Assembly (NCBI RefSeq): GCF_000315625.1
Contig: NW_005434648.1
Location: forward strand, 1 to 64,000
Source: Guillardia theta CCMP2712
Taxonomy: Eukaryota; Protista; Cryptophyta
DNA: 64,000 nucleotides
Reading direction: 5' to 3'
The translations under genes were made by a program, and so were the position numbers. Positions within the stretch are counted from its first letter, which is position 1. The number at the start of each line of letters is the position of its first letter. The notes beneath the pieces were generated by a model. The model worked only from the letters and a program-made list of their open reading frames with translations, was not told the DNA's origin and searched no databases. Below, one piece after another: positions 52,901 through 58,697 of this stretch.

Positions 52901-53900
52901 CGATGTCCCCTCCAGCGTATTTTTCTGCCACAGTATCCACCCCCTGCTCCTCCATATCGCAGAGCTTTTTCCCTCTGTTCGAGTCTTGGCCTATGCTGAC
53001 AACGTCGTGCTTGTCGGTCCACTCGAGGATGCCGTTGCAGCTACGTCCGCTAGAGATTCAACCTCGCCTGAGTCTGATCTCTCGCAGCTGAAGAAGAGCC
53101 TTAAGCGCCGTCTCAAGACTCAACTTCTTCACTTCGAGGTCGTCACTGGCGGGATTACACTTGGCGGCCTGCCTCGTTCACTGCGGGGCTGAATCTTTCG
53201 CTGATCTTCTTGCTGAAGCACAAGAGAAGTTCCCTGATGTACTGCAGGTGGATTTGACTGACATCCTCGACACCACTAGCCTGATCCAGGCGATCAAGCG
53301 CTACAGCTCCTTTGCGGGGACCGATGACCAAGGGTGGAGGATTCGGCAACACCTGTCTCCCCTCTCTAGTCATCCTGCAGCTTTGAAGCTCTACTGCAAA
53401 CATATCTTCCAAGGTAGTAGAGGATTTACTGGCAGAAGATAAAAAGTGCCTCAAGCAAGACAAAGCAGGAACACCAAGGGGTCCTTCTTGGCCAAATGCC
53501 GGATCTTCTTATTCCTGCCCTGTCAGCCATTCGTCGAGGAGGCAGATTTATTCCCCTCTCCAAGGGAGCTGATAAACCTGGTCTCCGGCCAATTGTCATC
53601 GGTTCCGAAGTTCTGCACACCGTCGACTCGCGACGAAGCTTGCTTTGGCAGCGATTCGCTCATTTCTTGACCAGCACTACCTCCTGGCACACAGCGCACA
53701 GCCGACGGTTTTACTAGGCACTTTTTCTAGTACTTTATACGAGTAAAACTCAGACCGTTGACGAAATCGCCATGCGCATTGAAGATCATGGTATCGTAAC
53801 ACAGAGCATTTGTCTCGGACAAAGTATGGACTTGACAAACTTGAATCACTCGCAGAAGGTAAAAAGTGCCTCACTGAAGCAGCAGAAAGCACGCGGCAAC
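46995..53900. mobile_element. Nested, scrambled cluster of CRE-like (RT plus CCHC plus restriction-like endonuclease) non-LTR retrotransposon fragments in both orientations; no intact copy
   Basis: RT motifs LSKG..KPGLRPI (~53560), LDAKNAFNSLDR and GVCQGD (48975-49519 -, 52825-53170 +), and AYADN (mutated YADD). Zinc knuckle CDGC...HLQTC...AHDN (~50790-50890) and RLE-like KGDI...ADVTLVHP (~51010-51165). The ORF C-terminus plus ~260-bp 3' UTR is repeated several times. Confidence 0.85.
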
Positions 53901-54470
53901 AACTTAGCAAAACCGTTAGGCAGAGAGCACACAGCAACCAAAGCGGTTACCGAAAGTAACCAGCTGAGCACTGCAGTGGCAACCTTTACCCATCAGGCTC
54001 ATACAACAGTTTATTGTTGAAACTTCAATAAACCACCCCCTTCGTTGTAATATCAATAGAATGACATACAAATTACTAGCCGTTATTATCCATACAGATC
54101 TTTCAATTGGGGGGGGGGTATTTTTGGTACTATACGCGGGGTGGGTGGATCTTCTTACCTCGAGCACCCCCTGTTATATTTCAGGCAAGAGTTCTTACCT
54201 CACCCCAAGTACCCTATACCCTTACTGAGCTGAGACCTGTAGGAAAAATGACCCCTACTGAAAAATGACCCCCCACCCCTCAATTCTCCGTCCCCTCCCC
54301 CCCCCCTCCCCCAATGGTGACCCAAAAATTAGAATCTCAAAAAAAAAGTCGAAATCGCGGTGTGGTGCAAACCCCGAACGGTAAAACAACAAAGGAGCAA
54401 CGAGAATATAGAATGTTGTGATTAAAAAAAAAGAACATCCCTGCAAATCCACCGGTACAAATCAATTCTT

Positions 54471-54913
54471 CCGAAGTCTAAACACCCGTCTGTTTATCTA
54501 TCAAAGTAAAAGTAGGGTTGGGTACCAGGTTTGTGGCTCAACAAACTTCGAATATTTCCCGCCTTCCCGCCTTACCGCCTTCATCCGAAGTCTAACTACC
54601 CGTTTGTTTATCTGTCGAACTTGAGTAGGGGTGGGTACCAGGTTTGTGGCCTTCCCGCCTTCCCGCCTTCATCCGAAGTCTAACTACCCGTTTGTTATCT
54701 GTCGAACTTGAGTAGGGGTGGGTACCAGGTTTGTGGCCTTCCCGCCTTCCCGCCTTCATCCGAAGTCTAACTACCCGTTTGTTATCTGTCGAACTTGAGT
54801 AGGGGTGGGTACCAGGTTTGTGGCCTTCCCGCCTTCCCGCCTTCATTCGAAGTCTAACTACCCGTTTGTTATCTGTCGAACTTGAGTAGGGGTGGGTACC
54901 AGGTTTGTGGCTC
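54471..54913 (+). repeat. 87-bp tandem array upstream of Fanzor (4 near-identical copies starting 54585, 54673, 54760 and 54847, plus a diverged copy at 54471)
   Basis: Unit ccgaagtctaactacccgtttgttatctgtcgaacttgagtaggggtgggtaccaggtttgtggccttcccgccttcccgccttcat. Confidence 0.95.
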
Positions 54914-55055
54914 TGTAAAGATTTCCCCGCCCTCCCGCCTTCTCTCCCTCCCTCCCATCCTCCCTCCCGCCTTCCATCACTCCCTTCTTCCCGCCCTCCC
55001 TCCCTCCCTCCCTCATTCCCGCCTTCCGAAGCTCCCGCGTTCACCCTGATCAAAT

Positions 55056-56984
55056 ATGGGGAAAAGGAAAAGAGGAAAACAAAGAAAGTCTTGTTCTGAT
55101 TCACAGACGACTGTCAAGATGTGTTTGAAAAAACATCTCAAACATCACACAATGATCGGTGTGATTGATGATTGGGTGAAACACATAAGCAAAATAAGCC
55201 ATCGAGGTAGCATCATCTTCAATCATCTATTGTTATGGTGTTTTGAGAAGGATTCAATGCAAGGTGATGATACGTACATTACAAGGCTGTTTGATCAGAT
55301 ATACAATCGTACTAGAAAAGTAACAGACAAAGAAAAAGAAGAAGGGATGCAAGAAGAAACGGTCAAGACCAATGGTGGAGAGAAAGTTTTCTTTCGGACC
55401 TGTTTTCTGATGGGTGAAAAACGCAGAGGTAATGCAATTCAGTTTGATATTTTAGACGAGTTTTGGCAAGAAAAAGGGAACAAGTATCTACCAATACAAC
55501 GCAGGAAAGAAGGGGATATTCGAGTACTGTACTATTCTGCTGATCAATATGCAACAAATTTCCAAAATTACATATTCTATACGATGGGACAAAAACAGAC
55601 TAGATACATAAAGGAATGGGGAAAGCTCAATGGGATTTCTTCAGAAAAGGAGATACAGGATATACGGAATACAGTAAACGGATGGAGCTTTCCACCAAAA
55701 ACTCGTGTTCTCGAAAGACAGGATGTCATTGATTTCATAAGGGAACAAAAAGAGATCATTGGATGGGACAATCATTATAACTTGTCATGGGCCCGTGACA
55801 AAATCAAGAAAAACCCTGAACAGCAAAAATGGATGCAATTACACATGCCAAATCTTGTCAAGTACCATTTTTCGGTTCTGAGGTTTTTGGAGATTCATGA
55901 TATATCTGATCGATACACGATCGCTCCGATTTTTCAGATACGCAAACAATTTATTCGCGTAGACATTTGGGGTTTATTCTACATTATGGATCAATCTGGT
56001 CTGTTGCAATATTCAAAGGGTGGGAAAAGCAAATGCATGAAAAAGTTCATACAACAAAAACATAAGCGATTCTTGTCGGTGTTGAAGCTACAATCAAATT
56101 TGAGAAAGAAAGGGACAGTTGATAGCATACAGACTGACGGAGTCGCACTCTGTGTGACGTTCAAGAAGAGAATACACAATGAGACAGACAATACTACTAC
56201 AAAGAAAAGCAAAACAAGAGATTGTGATGTGTCATCAAGACGAGTTATTGCAATCGATCCTGGTCGCAATGTACTGATATGCGGTGTCGAGCAAATACCT
56301 GGTCAAGAAAAACCAAAGCAGTATCGATATACTCGAAGGCAGTACTATCATGAGTCTCATATTACTCGGAATAACGCCAAGTTAGAAAAATGGAGACAAG
56401 GCATAACAGAAGAATCAAACGATATTGCAAGAGTGTCAGCAAAAACGTCTCGGTTGGATCACTTTGAAAGATACATCGACACCGTGGTGAGACTAAGCGA
56501 GATCCTGTTCGAACACAATTGTCAAAACAAGTTCGCACGCCTGAAGATGGATAACTACATCCACAAACACAAGGCGATTGATACGTTCTTCAAGAAGATG
56601 AAAGGTAATGGGACAGATCAAAATCCAATAATTGCATACGGTGATGCATCATTCGGTTGTACTGGGCGTGGAGAGAAGTCAGTGCCTGTAAAATGGATCA
56701 AAAGGCGATGTCAGAACTTCTTCGAGGTGACGGCAGTTGATGAATACAGAACGACAAAATGTTGCAATCAATGTCATCAAGAATTGTATGATTTGAGACG
56801 CAAACAAATCAACAAGAATGGTATACTTGCTGACGAAGTGTCAGTGGTGCGGGGTTTGAAATGGTGCAGATCCACCAATTGTGTTCAAAACCGTATCAAG
56901 TCTCGTGATGTCAATGCTGCTATGAATATTCTATTGTGCTACATGTCTCTACCAGCACGACCAGATTTTCTGAAACGGCCTTGA
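55056..56984 (+). CDS. Fz1: Fanzor1 (eukaryotic TnpB homolog), predicted RNA-guided DNA endonuclease, 642 aa, intronless
   Basis: RuvC-I VIAIDPGR (D401), Fanzor1-type IAYGDASF plus rearranged RuvC-II VDEYRTTKCC (E563), Zn finger CNQC...WCRSTNC, RuvC-III SRDVNAAMNI (D618), IQTDGVALCV motif, and an N-terminal basic NLS-like GKRKRGKQRK. Confidence 0.93.
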   Translation: MGKRKRGKQRKSCSDSQTTVKMCLKKHLKHHTMIGVIDDWVKHISKISHRGSIIFNHLLLWCFEKDSMQGDDTYITRLFDQIYNRTRKVTDKEKEEGMQEETVKTNGGEKVFFRTCFLMGEKRRGNAIQFDILDEFWQEKGNKYLPIQRRKEGDIRVLYYSADQYATNFQNYIFYTMGQKQTRYIKEWGKLNGISSEKEIQDIRNTVNGWSFPPKTRVLERQDVIDFIREQKEIIGWDNHYNLSWARDKIKKNPEQQKWMQLHMPNLVKYHFSVLRFLEIHDISDRYTIAPIFQIRKQFIRVDIWGLFYIMDQSGLLQYSKGGKSKCMKKFIQQKHKRFLSVLKLQSNLRKKGTVDSIQTDGVALCVTFKKRIHNETDNTTTKKSKTRDCDVSSRRVIAIDPGRNVLICGVEQIPGQEKPKQYRYTRRQYYHESHITRNNAKLEKWRQGITEESNDIARVSAKTSRLDHFERYIDTVVRLSEILFEHNCQNKFARLKMDNYIHKHKAIDTFFKKMKGNGTDQNPIIAYGDASFGCTGRGEKSVPVKWIKRRCQNFFEVTAVDEYRTTKCCNQCHQELYDLRRKQINKNGILADEVSVVRGLKWCRSTNCVQNRIKSRDVNAAMNILLCYMSLPARPDFLKRP

Positions 56985-57138
56985 ATCACACATGGGTCTG
57001 GTTATACTTCAACCTGTTCTTCATAGAAAGGATGAAGTACGAGTCAGACACAAGGAAATATTGGCGTGTGGGTCTTCAATGATCCATAATTTCGACGGAA
57101 AATTTAGAATTTTGAAATTTTATGTTTTGTGTCGTTTA
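56981..57138 (+). ncRNA. Candidate Fanzor omega-RNA scaffold (guide predicted immediately downstream)
   Basis: Nested stems TTGAA/TTCAA, CACAC/GTGTG, GTCTG/CAGAC, TACTTCA/TGAAGTA, CCT/AGG and TTCT/AGAA close a TCAT loop (56981-57079). A second hairpin lies at 57085-57124. The position at the ORF 3' end is as established for TnpB/Fanzor; the exact ends are unknown. Confidence 0.65.
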
Positions 57139-57185
57139 GCTAATAAACTCGACCAGCAAGTTCAGGGCAGAAGGTTGCGAGTTTC

Positions 57186-58697
57186 ATGGCGACGAAGCGT
57201 TCAGGGCAGAAGGTCGAGGTGCAGGAGCAACGTCTGCAGCTTGCAGATAGAGAGGAAGCCGTTGATGCTCCTGCACAGAAGAAGCGAGACAAGAAGGCCC
57301 GGAAGAGCAGCAGCTTCGCCGGGTCCTTGGAACATGGAGATTTGGTTGACCAAAGCAAGCAACCGGTTTCAATCTGCGTCTGGGTTCCTAAGGGAGGATG
57401 CGGCAAAACAACCTTCACCTTCCACATCAGCCGAATCTTTGCTGAGCGAGGATACAAGGTGCTGATGGTTGATTGCGATAGTCAGCGAGACCTGTCCCAG
57501 ATTTCGCTCCGGAAGAGGTTCGACGAAGAAACAGAGTACCAGGAGGATTACACGAGGTACATCACTAGAGAGGGCCCGAACAAAACGAGCGTCAACCGTA
57601 CCCTGTATCAGATGCTTCAGCCCCTTATTTCCCAGAATCTTGGGGAGTACCGCATTGCAGAGGCTAACCCTGAAGTCATCCTTGAGAAGACTGACAAGGG
57701 AGGCTGTCTGCACTTGCTGGCCGGCCATCATGAGACGGACGTGATCGACTCAAAGCTAGCCTCGCACGAATCCACCATCCAGACCTTTCCGCAAAACGCA
57801 GAACTCATTGGTGGGGTGTACGCTGCGATACAACGCGTTGCTCAGAACATGAAAGCTGACATAATCATCTGTGACCTGGCCCCGGGCAAGGGCCCATTCA
57901 CGCGGGCGCTCATGATGTCTTCAGACTACTACATCGTCCCCGTCAAGCCTGACTTCTACTCGTACGAGGCCGTCACCTCCATCGTCGATCGGATGACGCG
58001 GAACCCTGAAGGAGCAACGGGGTTCGCGGCAGAGAATCATTGCTGGATCGAGTACGCGCACACGTACCTTGTTCCCATGACGGCCAAATGCAAGTATCCC
58101 TTCCCAAAGAAGAGCCCAAAATTCCTCGGGTACGTCATCACCGATTACTCAGTGCACATCGCCAACAATGGGCAGATGGCTCAAGGTGTGGTCACAGAGC
58201 AGACGGCGAGGAATCGCGAGAGATGGATGAACGCCATTCACACGGTGGTTAACAGACGCGTCACTGACCTCGTCAACTTCTCGCTCACCAACGGCGATCG
58301 AGTTTCCTCCGCGTTTGAAGTTGCGAGCTACAACGCGCTCAATGTGGTGCCGTACCTCGTGGGGAAGGTTCGGTCCTTCGAGACCCTTCAGTCCATTAGC
58401 CACATCTGGGGAGTTCCAGTGCCCTTCCTCGACAAGGATAAGGGACACTTCGTGCGCGACGATGGCTTCGGGCAACTTGAGCCGATGAACGGGCGAGACA
58501 TTCCCACCTACGTGGCCAAGTGCGACTTCTTCAAGAGGATCTTTGATCAGATCGCATGGACTATGCTTTCTCTGATCCATTCTGACAATGGGCCTGGCCG
58601 TTGCAGGATCAAGGAGCCCGAGGACTTGCTGAAGAGCAAACTTGGCGGGCGACCGCCTCCATCTCCTCTCTTCTTCAACGCTGACCGTGACATGTGA
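57186..58697 (+). CDS. Bacterial-type ParA/Soj-family (SIMIBI) ATPase, intronless, 503 aa
   Basis: Deviant Walker A PKGGCGKTT, A' VLMVDCDSQ, LLAGH, Walker B IIICDLAPG, SDYYIVPVKPDFYS and PKFLGYVI. The N-terminal extension is basic. Confidence 0.85.
   Translation: MATKRSGQKVEVQEQRLQLADREEAVDAPAQKKRDKKARKSSSFAGSLEHGDLVDQSKQPVSICVWVPKGGCGKTTFTFHISRIFAERGYKVLMVDCDSQRDLSQISLRKRFDEETEYQEDYTRYITREGPNKTSVNRTLYQMLQPLISQNLGEYRIAEANPEVILEKTDKGGCLHLLAGHHETDVIDSKLASHESTIQTFPQNAELIGGVYAAIQRVAQNMKADIIICDLAPGKGPFTRALMMSSDYYIVPVKPDFYSYEAVTSIVDRMTRNPEGATGFAAENHCWIEYAHTYLVPMTAKCKYPFPKKSPKFLGYVITDYSVHIANNGQMAQGVVTEQTARNRERWMNAIHTVVNRRVTDLVNFSLTNGDRVSSAFEVASYNALNVVPYLVGKVRSFETLQSISHIWGVPVPFLDKDKGHFVRDDGFGQLEPMNGRDIPTYVAKCDFFKRIFDQIAWTMLSLIHSDNGPGRCRIKEPEDLLKSKLGGRPPPSPLFFNADRDM

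Follow-up and report, generated by a model that had tools for sequence, protein, structure and literature searches.

An intact Fanzor1-type gene on a young copy of a multi-copy element of Guillardia theta: a candidate RNA-guided nuclease distinct from GtFz1

Does the cryptophyte Guillardia theta CCMP2712 carry, besides the Fanzor already tested from this organism (GtFz1), a second and intact gene for an RNA-guided nuclease? The question is raised by the first 64,000 nt of contig NW_005434648.1 (assembly GCF_000315625.1, forward strand; "the window" hereafter), in which one open reading frame (ORF) of 642 amino acids (aa) has the appearance of a Fanzor1 gene and lies within a repeat element of about 2.85 kb (Table 1). 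Fanzors are eukaryotic RNA-guided nucleases that are being developed as compact genome editors, and to our knowledge only a handful of them have been tested so far. We consider it highly probable that the window copy encodes a Fanzor1 that acts as an omega-RNA-guided nuclease; RNA binding, the guide, the target-adjacent motif (TAM), and cleavage are parts of this reading that we infer. The gene, its family, its conserved catalytic residues, its copy number in the genome, the exact 3' boundary of the element, and the non-identity of the protein with GtFz1 are established below, the fold being taken from a model.

The ORF listing gives a single frame that starts with ATG, contains no internal stop, and is intronless, and its G+C content (0.38-0.42) contrasts with values of 0.52-0.64 in both flanks. 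These data bear out a preliminary description of the locus, made from the sequence, which had called the ORF uninterrupted and AT-richer than the host genes, and had assigned to the protein the RuvC triad D401/E563/D618, four zinc-finger cysteines, and a basic N-terminus, all of which are found at those positions. The zinc ligands are C570 and C573 (in CCNQC) and C604 and C609 (in WCRSTNC). The N-terminus reads MGKRKRGKQRK and is a likely nuclear localisation signal; such signals have been documented at the N-terminus of Fanzors (PMC10530073). Across 40 homologues with 24-40% identity, no variation is seen at D401, E563, or G529, and conservation reaches at least 90% at D618, N620, A621, N624, and C573. 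In published Fanzors the active site is rearranged: the canonical RuvC-II position holds an inert residue, and the glutamate has moved to between beta-5 and the zinc ribbon (PMC10530073; PMC11423790). The placement of E563, in vDEyrT before the zinc finger, and of G529, which occupies the canonical RuvC-II position as part of 'AYG', agrees with this arrangement, as had been proposed when the YG at that position was described as Fanzor1-type. Pfam family PF07282 (Cas12f1-like_TNB) matches residues 557-625 of the window protein with E = 2e-4 and 21.8 bits, under the curated cut-off of 26.3 bits; among the 40 family members, 32 match it, the best with E = 9.6e-11.

A word-indexed sequence search returned four relatives, with identities of 99%, 87%, 38% (Hanusia phi), and 37%, and an exhaustive profile search returned 4579 cluster representatives at E <= 1e-3, of which 441 reach E <= 1e-30; most are proteins of 550-700 aa that match from end to end. 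The sole named relative among ten that were looked up is the 'putative transposase DNA-binding domain protein' of Marseillevirus LCMAC101. This protein and the one from Hanusia phi agree with Fanzor1 as a clade encoded in eukaryotic or giant-virus genomes, and the basic N-terminus of the window protein is in keeping with adaptation to a eukaryotic host. Searched alone against the PDB (phmmer, single sequence), the window protein has no match; a family profile built from six sequences finds SpuFz1 (E = 2.6e-20), PpFz1 (1e-13), and GtFz1 (6.4e-9), with the DPG, DEY-T, and RD-N motifs aligned. The AlphaFold2 model obtained from six sequences was poor (predicted local distance difference test, pLDDT, 64), and its top seven Foldseek matches were still Fanzor1 chains; the model obtained from 40 sequences has a pLDDT of 89.2 and a predicted template modelling (TM) score, pTM, of 0.87. 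With this second model, Foldseek reports SpuFz1 at E = 3e-20 and TM scores of 0.66-0.74, PpFz1 at 0.66, and GtFz1 at 0.54, compared to about 0.2 for Cas12f, TnpB, and Fanzor2. VIA-align places SpuFz1 first (Z = 24.9; 536 residues, 4.0 A), followed by PpFz1 (Z = 24.1) and GtFz1 (Z = 20.0; 501 residues), with 501-550 residues aligned, and the runner-up fold is Cas12j (Z = 12.6). The REC, WED, split RuvC, and TNB parts of the architecture are all predicted with high confidence. Any doubt as to whether the best structural match would be a TnpB/Fanzor RuvC domain, for which the preliminary description had left room, is removed by the three solved Fanzor1 proteins, which head the comparison and match the model over its full length. 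As modelled, the window protein is a Fanzor1-clade homologue of TnpB in which the RuvC D-E-D site is complete.

For Fanzor1 proteins, GtFz1 and SpuFz1 among them, cutting of double-stranded DNA (dsDNA) under the guidance of an omega-RNA has been proven (PMC10432273; PMC11423790), and the shared organism and protein superfamily might suggest that the window ORF is simply a copy or allele of GtFz1. We give this possibility practically no weight, as it is refuted by a sequence identity of 22% and by a separate GtFz1 locus in the genome (87.1 Mb, 669 contigs, labelled C1, C26, and so on). BLASTP aligns the two proteins over residues 356-626 only (E = 9e-6), pairing D401 with D427, E563 with the glutamate of VPEHYTS, and D618 with N658, the non-canonical asparagine that GtFz1 uses according to Xu et al. 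(PMC11423790). GtFz1 itself (XP_005840014, 690 aa), which matches PDB entries 9CER, 9CES, and 9CET at E = 0, is encoded on C7 (L069:1932-4001), and the first 40 nt of its omega-RNA, published at NW_005434667 (scaffold 7):896451-896603 (PMC10432273), match C7:896451-896490 exactly. The G. theta loci file of Saito et al. lists only scaffolds 7 and 348, both coding MSNIRIVKRK proteins, and the window peptide MGKRKRGKQRKS is absent from the supplements of that study (PMC10432273). Moreover, no second Guillardia Fanzor family is described in the papers searched that mention both Fanzor and Guillardia. Because of the low identity to GtFz1, the absence of the peptide from these supplements, and the lack of a second family in those papers, we regard the window ORF as an apparently new Fanzor1 lineage, distinct from the tested GtFz1. 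Whether this exact ortholog had already been tested, a point left open in the preliminary description, is answered to the same effect.

The window segment that contains the ORF belongs to a multi-copy, non-autonomous mobile element, of which it is a young copy and in which the Fanzor ORF is the only gene. A six-frame search of the genome found seven full-length open copies with 99-100% identity, two on C26 and one each on C1, C30, C14, C78, and C6; the number of intact copies is a lower bound (at least seven), and many further partial copies are present. These numbers are the outcome of the copy search suggested in the preliminary description; in the empty-site search suggested with it, the left flank of the C1 copy served as the query, and no empty site, paralogous or allelic, came to light. 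Homology of the window to other copies spans 54311 to 57145-57147 in BLAST alignments. The right boundary is exact: about 20 copies finish ...TTTTGTGTCGTTTAGCTAATA and are then followed by fully unlike flanks, and a common sharp 3' end, ...GTTTAGCTAATA, is seen in about 23 copies, the 3'-terminal 21-mer being found 23 times genome-wide and always in this element. At the left end, six copies are longer by 22 nt (N-TGGTTAAGTGACACACTATGA), so that the window copy, which lacks this extension, is slightly 5'-truncated; its left edge adjoins a C-rich, otherwise unique stretch. The 5' leader of the window element is 745 nt long and holds an 87-bp tandem array and a (CCCT)n run. On a metagenome contig (L075; ENA ERZ930071, 3405 nt) there is a 98%-identical copy that has an intact 642-aa ORF, the same 3' end, a different right flank (AAAGTTACTCAGCGG...), and a 5' truncation inside the tandem array; it is indicative of one more insertion site, beyond those of the reference genome.

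In the mechanism that we propose, transcription would cross the structured ~200-nt 3' end of the element and continue in the flanking DNA, the Fanzor protein would bind the 3' RNA as an omega-RNA scaffold, the ~15-20 nt beyond 57145 would serve as the guide, and the ribonucleoprotein (RNP) would cut guide-matching dsDNA beside a short 5' motif, YATA. A guide role for the flank past the element follows the TnpB/Fanzor paradigm (PMC10432273). The segment 56925-57145 (221 nt) folds at -60.2 kcal/mol (z = -3.8), a stability that none of 200 shuffles attained. The consensus fold of nine copies comprises 66 pairs, with 13 one-sided pair-preserving changes and three broken pairs, and holds a long hairpin after the stop codon together with a stem that closes 57059-57065 on the last seven nt of the element (57139-57145). 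A scan of the 3' region against Rfam returned no relevant family; a related ...TTTTGTCGTTTA... motif ends the contig of the 37%-identical homologue (L074). The shortest copies keep a tail of ~47-49 nt, the mini-copies on C191 and C131 beginning at window-equivalent positions 57098-57099. RNA reads from run X17, compared with 53900-57600, cover the ORF body at 0.15-1.3x (from 6% of the run) and the last ~43-45 nt at ~15x, and from there they extend past the end of at least three other copies (C26:577224, C3, and C82), the C82 copy being marked in these reads by a G>A variant at 57124. Contigs of runs that are probably RNA likewise cover the Fanzor ORF in its 3' half. Position and structure of the 3' end would fit an omega-RNA with a guide that starts at 57146, and YATA, which precedes eight of eight intact left junctions, is a candidate TAM.

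Several observations weigh against an active, RNA-guided nuclease. No compensatory changes are found in the 3' structure among the nine copies, which are too alike for a covariation test, and 34 of the X17 reads carry a non-templated T13 (in plus-strand coordinates) before 57103; their strand and ends being ambiguous, such reads may stem from an antisense poly(A) site or from a point at which the RNA is processed. Instead of a TAM, YATA may reflect a preference in the choice of insertion sites, and the window copy offers no TAM of its own because its left tip is lost. The 87%-identical lineage (L073) lacks 145 nt of the putative scaffold (window-equivalent 56959-57103), keeps the terminal ~45-nt tail, and is frameshifted at the C-terminus. 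Compared with the window ORF, the other intact copies show non-synonymous to synonymous codon changes of 1:0, 3:2, 5:3, 7:2, and 8:4, near the neutral expectation, with the catalytic residues untouched. Finally, some Fanzors that form RNPs show no cleavage in vitro, as reported for CrFNuc-1 (PMC10530073).

The near-neutral changes among the copies, together with the behaviour of CrFNuc-1, the lack of indels with GtFz1 in human cells (PMC10432273), and the many truncated or decayed copies, would also be expected of a protein that is a Fanzor1 by descent but no active RNA-guided nuclease, either binding RNA or DNA without cutting or persisting as a neutral passenger that is intact through recency. 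We judge this quite unlikely, given that all catalytic residues and zinc ligands are present and conserved in relatives with 24-40% identity, that the entire REC, WED, RuvC, and TNB architecture is confidently predicted, and that comparison with L073 gives non-synonymous (dN) and synonymous (dS) divergences of 0.067 and 0.272. The resulting dN/dS of 0.25 argues for purifying selection on the gene between bursts. The preliminary description had held the copy to be young or under selection: its youth stands, and the near-neutral changes indicate that the window copy is intact because it is recent, while selection is not seen among the copies and is purifying at the level of lineages only. The L073 sequence (L073:1800-2047, on a JGI 3300016466 contig, with 87% aa identity) is probably transcribed; an 8-nt insertion shifts the reading frame just past the RuvC-III motif and, judged by its sequence, it is a decayed copy. 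Three edges lie within 57098-57104, namely the T13 point at 57103, the 5' edge of the C191 and C131 mini-copies, and the right edge of the 145-nt deletion in L073.

If the last ~200 nt supply the scaffold of the proposed nuclease, do they also explain how the element spreads? Junctions of several copies are flanked by short duplications (Table 1), all of which start with ATA, the trinucleotide that also ends the window element. In six full-length copies they measure 3-4 nt, and summed they reach 66 nt compared to 25.7 +/- 4.1 (maximum 43) when the flanks are randomly re-paired, a total attained in none of 751 permutations. In the C6 and C191 duplications, ATA and the first 7-9 nt of the right flank are repeated at the left junction, and these correspond to the start of the would-be guide target. 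Right ends (~23) outnumber left ends (8-9), truncation points vary between copies, at least ten copies are 5'-truncated at different points with the 3' end intact, and extra G residues stand at some 5' junctions. Terminal inverted repeats are not significant, the tips matching at 11 of 16 positions and the best local inverted match being subterminal (19/24, reached by 11 of 1000 shuffles), and the left-end 21-mer occurs nowhere else in the genome, so that no transposase-bearing element with the same left end is present there. A cut-and-paste DDE transposon of the piggyBac, hAT, or Tc1 type was rejected on the basis of the missing terminal inverted repeat, duplications of 3 to ~17 nt, and the many 5'-truncated copies; with respect to a piggyBac/TTAA model in particular, the TTAA of the left tip belongs to the conserved end itself, and none is present at the right junction. 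The insertion pattern is unlike DDE or IS605 transposition and resembles target-primed copying.

These features raise the possibility that the 3' end is mainly a mobilisation signal and that the element spreads via an RNA or nick-primed intermediate, like a LINE-dependent retroposon (LINE, long interspersed nuclear element). The 3' boundary, the hairpin, and ATA would then reflect recognition by a polymerase acting in trans and microhomology priming at the target, with no need to invoke a guide-RNA scaffold, although such a function may coexist with an omega-RNA role. The excess of right ends, the 5' truncations with an intact 3' end, the ATA-started duplications of variable length, the extra G residues, and the absence of both a significant terminal inverted repeat and a left end shared with a transposase-bearing element are all consistent with this explanation, as are the intronless ORF, the variable number of 87-bp units in the leader, and the association of Fanzor1c with LINEs described by Jiang et al. 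(PMC10530073). No reverse transcriptase is present in or beside the element, however, and the upstream ORFs have no Pfam match; there is no LINE family with the same 3' tail, given that the 21-mer is confined to the 23 places that belong to this element; no poly(A) or simple-repeat tail is seen; seven truncated copies are without duplication; and the upstream sequence is unique, offering no partner for a chimeric retrocopy. A chimeric retrocopy formed with an upstream LINE likewise finds no support, as 53700-54310 is unique apart from a dispersed repeat of ~100 nt and the upstream ORFs hold no Pfam domain. On this evidence a 3' end that is mainly a mobilisation signal is possible, if on the doubtful side.

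We put forward still more tentatively, as a rather doubtful extension, that the Fanzor carrier multiplies by target-primed, probably RNA-mediated copying and that one ~200-nt 3' module is both mobilisation tail and omega-RNA scaffold. If this is true, the element would be a retroposon that carries an RNA-guided nuclease, and each insertion would reset the guide. Saito et al. remark that the Guillardia Fanzor loci have neither inverted repeats nor transposases (PMC10432273), and the pattern of variable duplications fits both this remark and the Fanzor1c-LINE associations of Jiang et al. (PMC10530073).

Table 1. Features of the window element and duplications at the junctions of its genomic copies
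Feature	Position or copy	Strand	Basis or remark
Copy of the ~2.85-kb Fanzor-bearing repeat element, without the first 22 nt of the left end	54311..57145	+	BLAST against other copies
87-bp tandem array in 5' leader, 4.0 units	54561..54911	+	Tandem Repeats Finder (TRF): period 87, 98% matches; unit number varies between copies
(CCCT)n microsatellite just before start codon	54926..55014	+	TRF: period 4, 22 copies
Fanzor1-type nuclease ORF, 642 aa, intronless	55056..56984	+	ORF listing, motifs, profile match, model, structure comparison
Basic N-terminal patch MGKRKRGKQRKS, likely nuclear localisation signal	55056..55091	+	Sequence; model pLDDT <50 at residues 1-12 (disordered)
RuvC-I aspartate D401, context VIAIDPGRN	56256..56258	+	Invariant in 40 homologues; aligns with VVIDPN of SpuFz1 and D427 of GtFz1
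Relocated RuvC glutamate E563, context AVDEYRTTK, directly before zinc ribbon	56742..56744	+	Invariant in 40 homologues; aligns with LLDEYKTS of SpuFz1
Zinc-ribbon / TNB segment, C570-x2-C573 ... C604-x4-C609	56763..56882	+	PF07282 match, residues 557-625; C573 and C604 conserved
RuvC-III aspartate D618, context KSRDVNAAMNI	56907..56909	+	At least 90% conserved; aligns with NRD motif of SpuFz1 and N658 of GtFz1
Structured 3' end: candidate omega-RNA scaffold and/or 3' mobilisation tail, overlapping last ~15 ORF codons	56940..57145	+	Fold and consensus fold
Subterminal hairpin (CGACGG...TGTGTCG), 11 nt from element end	57093..57134	+	Folds; within minimal tail of shortest copies
Predicted guide segment AACTCGACCAGCAAGTTCAG, first ~20 nt of unique flank	57146..57165	+	Sequence differs in every copy from here; 21 nt upstream of ParA-like ATG
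Junction duplication ATAA	C64		
Junction duplication ATAG	C1		
Junction duplication ATAT	C26b		
Junction duplication ATAA	C62		
Junction duplication ATA only	C78, C14		
Junction duplication ATATC (5 nt)	C42		
Junction duplication ATATAAGAGG (10 nt)	C6 (C6:871339-873918)		8 nt of left tip missing, extra G
Junction duplication ATAATTACAATC (12 nt)	C191:50179-50225		Around ~47-49-nt mini-copy
Junction duplication ~17 nt	C101		

Two neighbours of the element were also considered. The dispersed repeat mentioned above (window 53848-53955, ~100 nt) lies ~350 nt upstream of the Fanzor element and has more than 30 genomic copies with 72-89% identity on both strands. Downstream, an intronless 503-aa ORF at 57186-58697 (+) encodes a ParA/MinD-type P-loop ATPase (Pfam AAA_31, E = 1.6e-21; CbiA, 5e-13; NCBIfam ParA_partition, 9e-16, below its cut-off) with a deviant Walker A motif, KGGCGKT. 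It was rejected as a part of the element, being single-copy, with only distant paralogues at 29-30% identity, lying outside the repeat boundary, and being unrelated to the ORF upstream of the Fanzor paralogue on C72; it is a host gene. The element ends 41 nt before the ATG of this ParA-like gene, which places the predicted guide within its 5' leader.

Paralogue families of the window protein are present in G. theta at 37-47% identity, on C72, on C201, and at ~13 loci of the type found on C23. The C23 locus (L072; C23:689000-695500) and its ~13 sister loci are 46-47% identical to the window protein over residues ~387-610; these copies are 99-100% identical to one another over a tested stretch of 701 nt, a single in-frame TAA falls in the RuvC half of each, and their 3' region holds ...TTCGTCGTTCAGAAGG, reminiscent of the GTCGTTTAGC tail of the window element.

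The window family provides a naturally intact, intronless 642-aa Fanzor1 candidate with the canonical D-E-D site; in structure it is closest to SpuFz1, a Fanzor with editing activity in human cells, and not to GtFz1, for which no such activity was seen. Since ~20 genomic copies fix the predicted scaffold-guide junction to a single base, the design of a TAM screen and of an expression construct can start from it directly. In addition, the insertion signature bears on a question posed by Saito et al., which concerns the spread of Guillardia Fanzor loci without inverted repeats or transposases and the part that the nuclease plays for them.

The window protein can also be compared with known systems. 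Its relation to GtFz1 is one of shared genome and shared Fanzor1 architecture, and the published GtFz1 loci likewise have no clear inverted repeats or associated transposase (PMC10432273). The two differ, however, in the RuvC-III residue (N658 in GtFz1, D618 in the window protein), in length (690 and 642 aa), in the 3' RNA region, in the motif beside the target (a TTAAN TAM compared to the candidate YATA), and in number, with two loci in the supplement of Saito et al. compared to at least seven intact and ~16 partial copies of the window family. TnpB of IS200/IS605 elements (such as ISDra2) and Cas12f share the RuvC and zinc-ribbon core (VIA-align Z of ~10-11), and they employ an RNA encoded at the right end with a guide taken from the flank just beyond the element boundary, an arrangement that the window element may share. 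Unlike these proteins, the window protein has a far bigger REC region, a relocated glutamate, and an N-terminal patch that resembles a nuclear localisation signal; its element holds no TnpA, and its family shows both target duplications and 5' truncations, neither of which is made by IS605 peel-and-paste transposition. The closest solved relative is SpuFz1 of Spizellomyces punctatus (PDB 8GKH, 9CEU-9CEZ), which has the same triad of aspartate, relocated glutamate, and canonical third aspartate, and the same zinc ribbon. Sequence identity to SpuFz1 amounts to only 16-18%, inverted repeats are present in SpuFz1 elements whereas the terminal inverted repeat of the window family is not significant, and SpuFz1 is a proven nuclease whereas the Guillardia protein is known from sequence and model. 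The CATA TAM of SpuFz1 (PMC10432273) resembles the YATA found upstream of the intact left ends in the window family.

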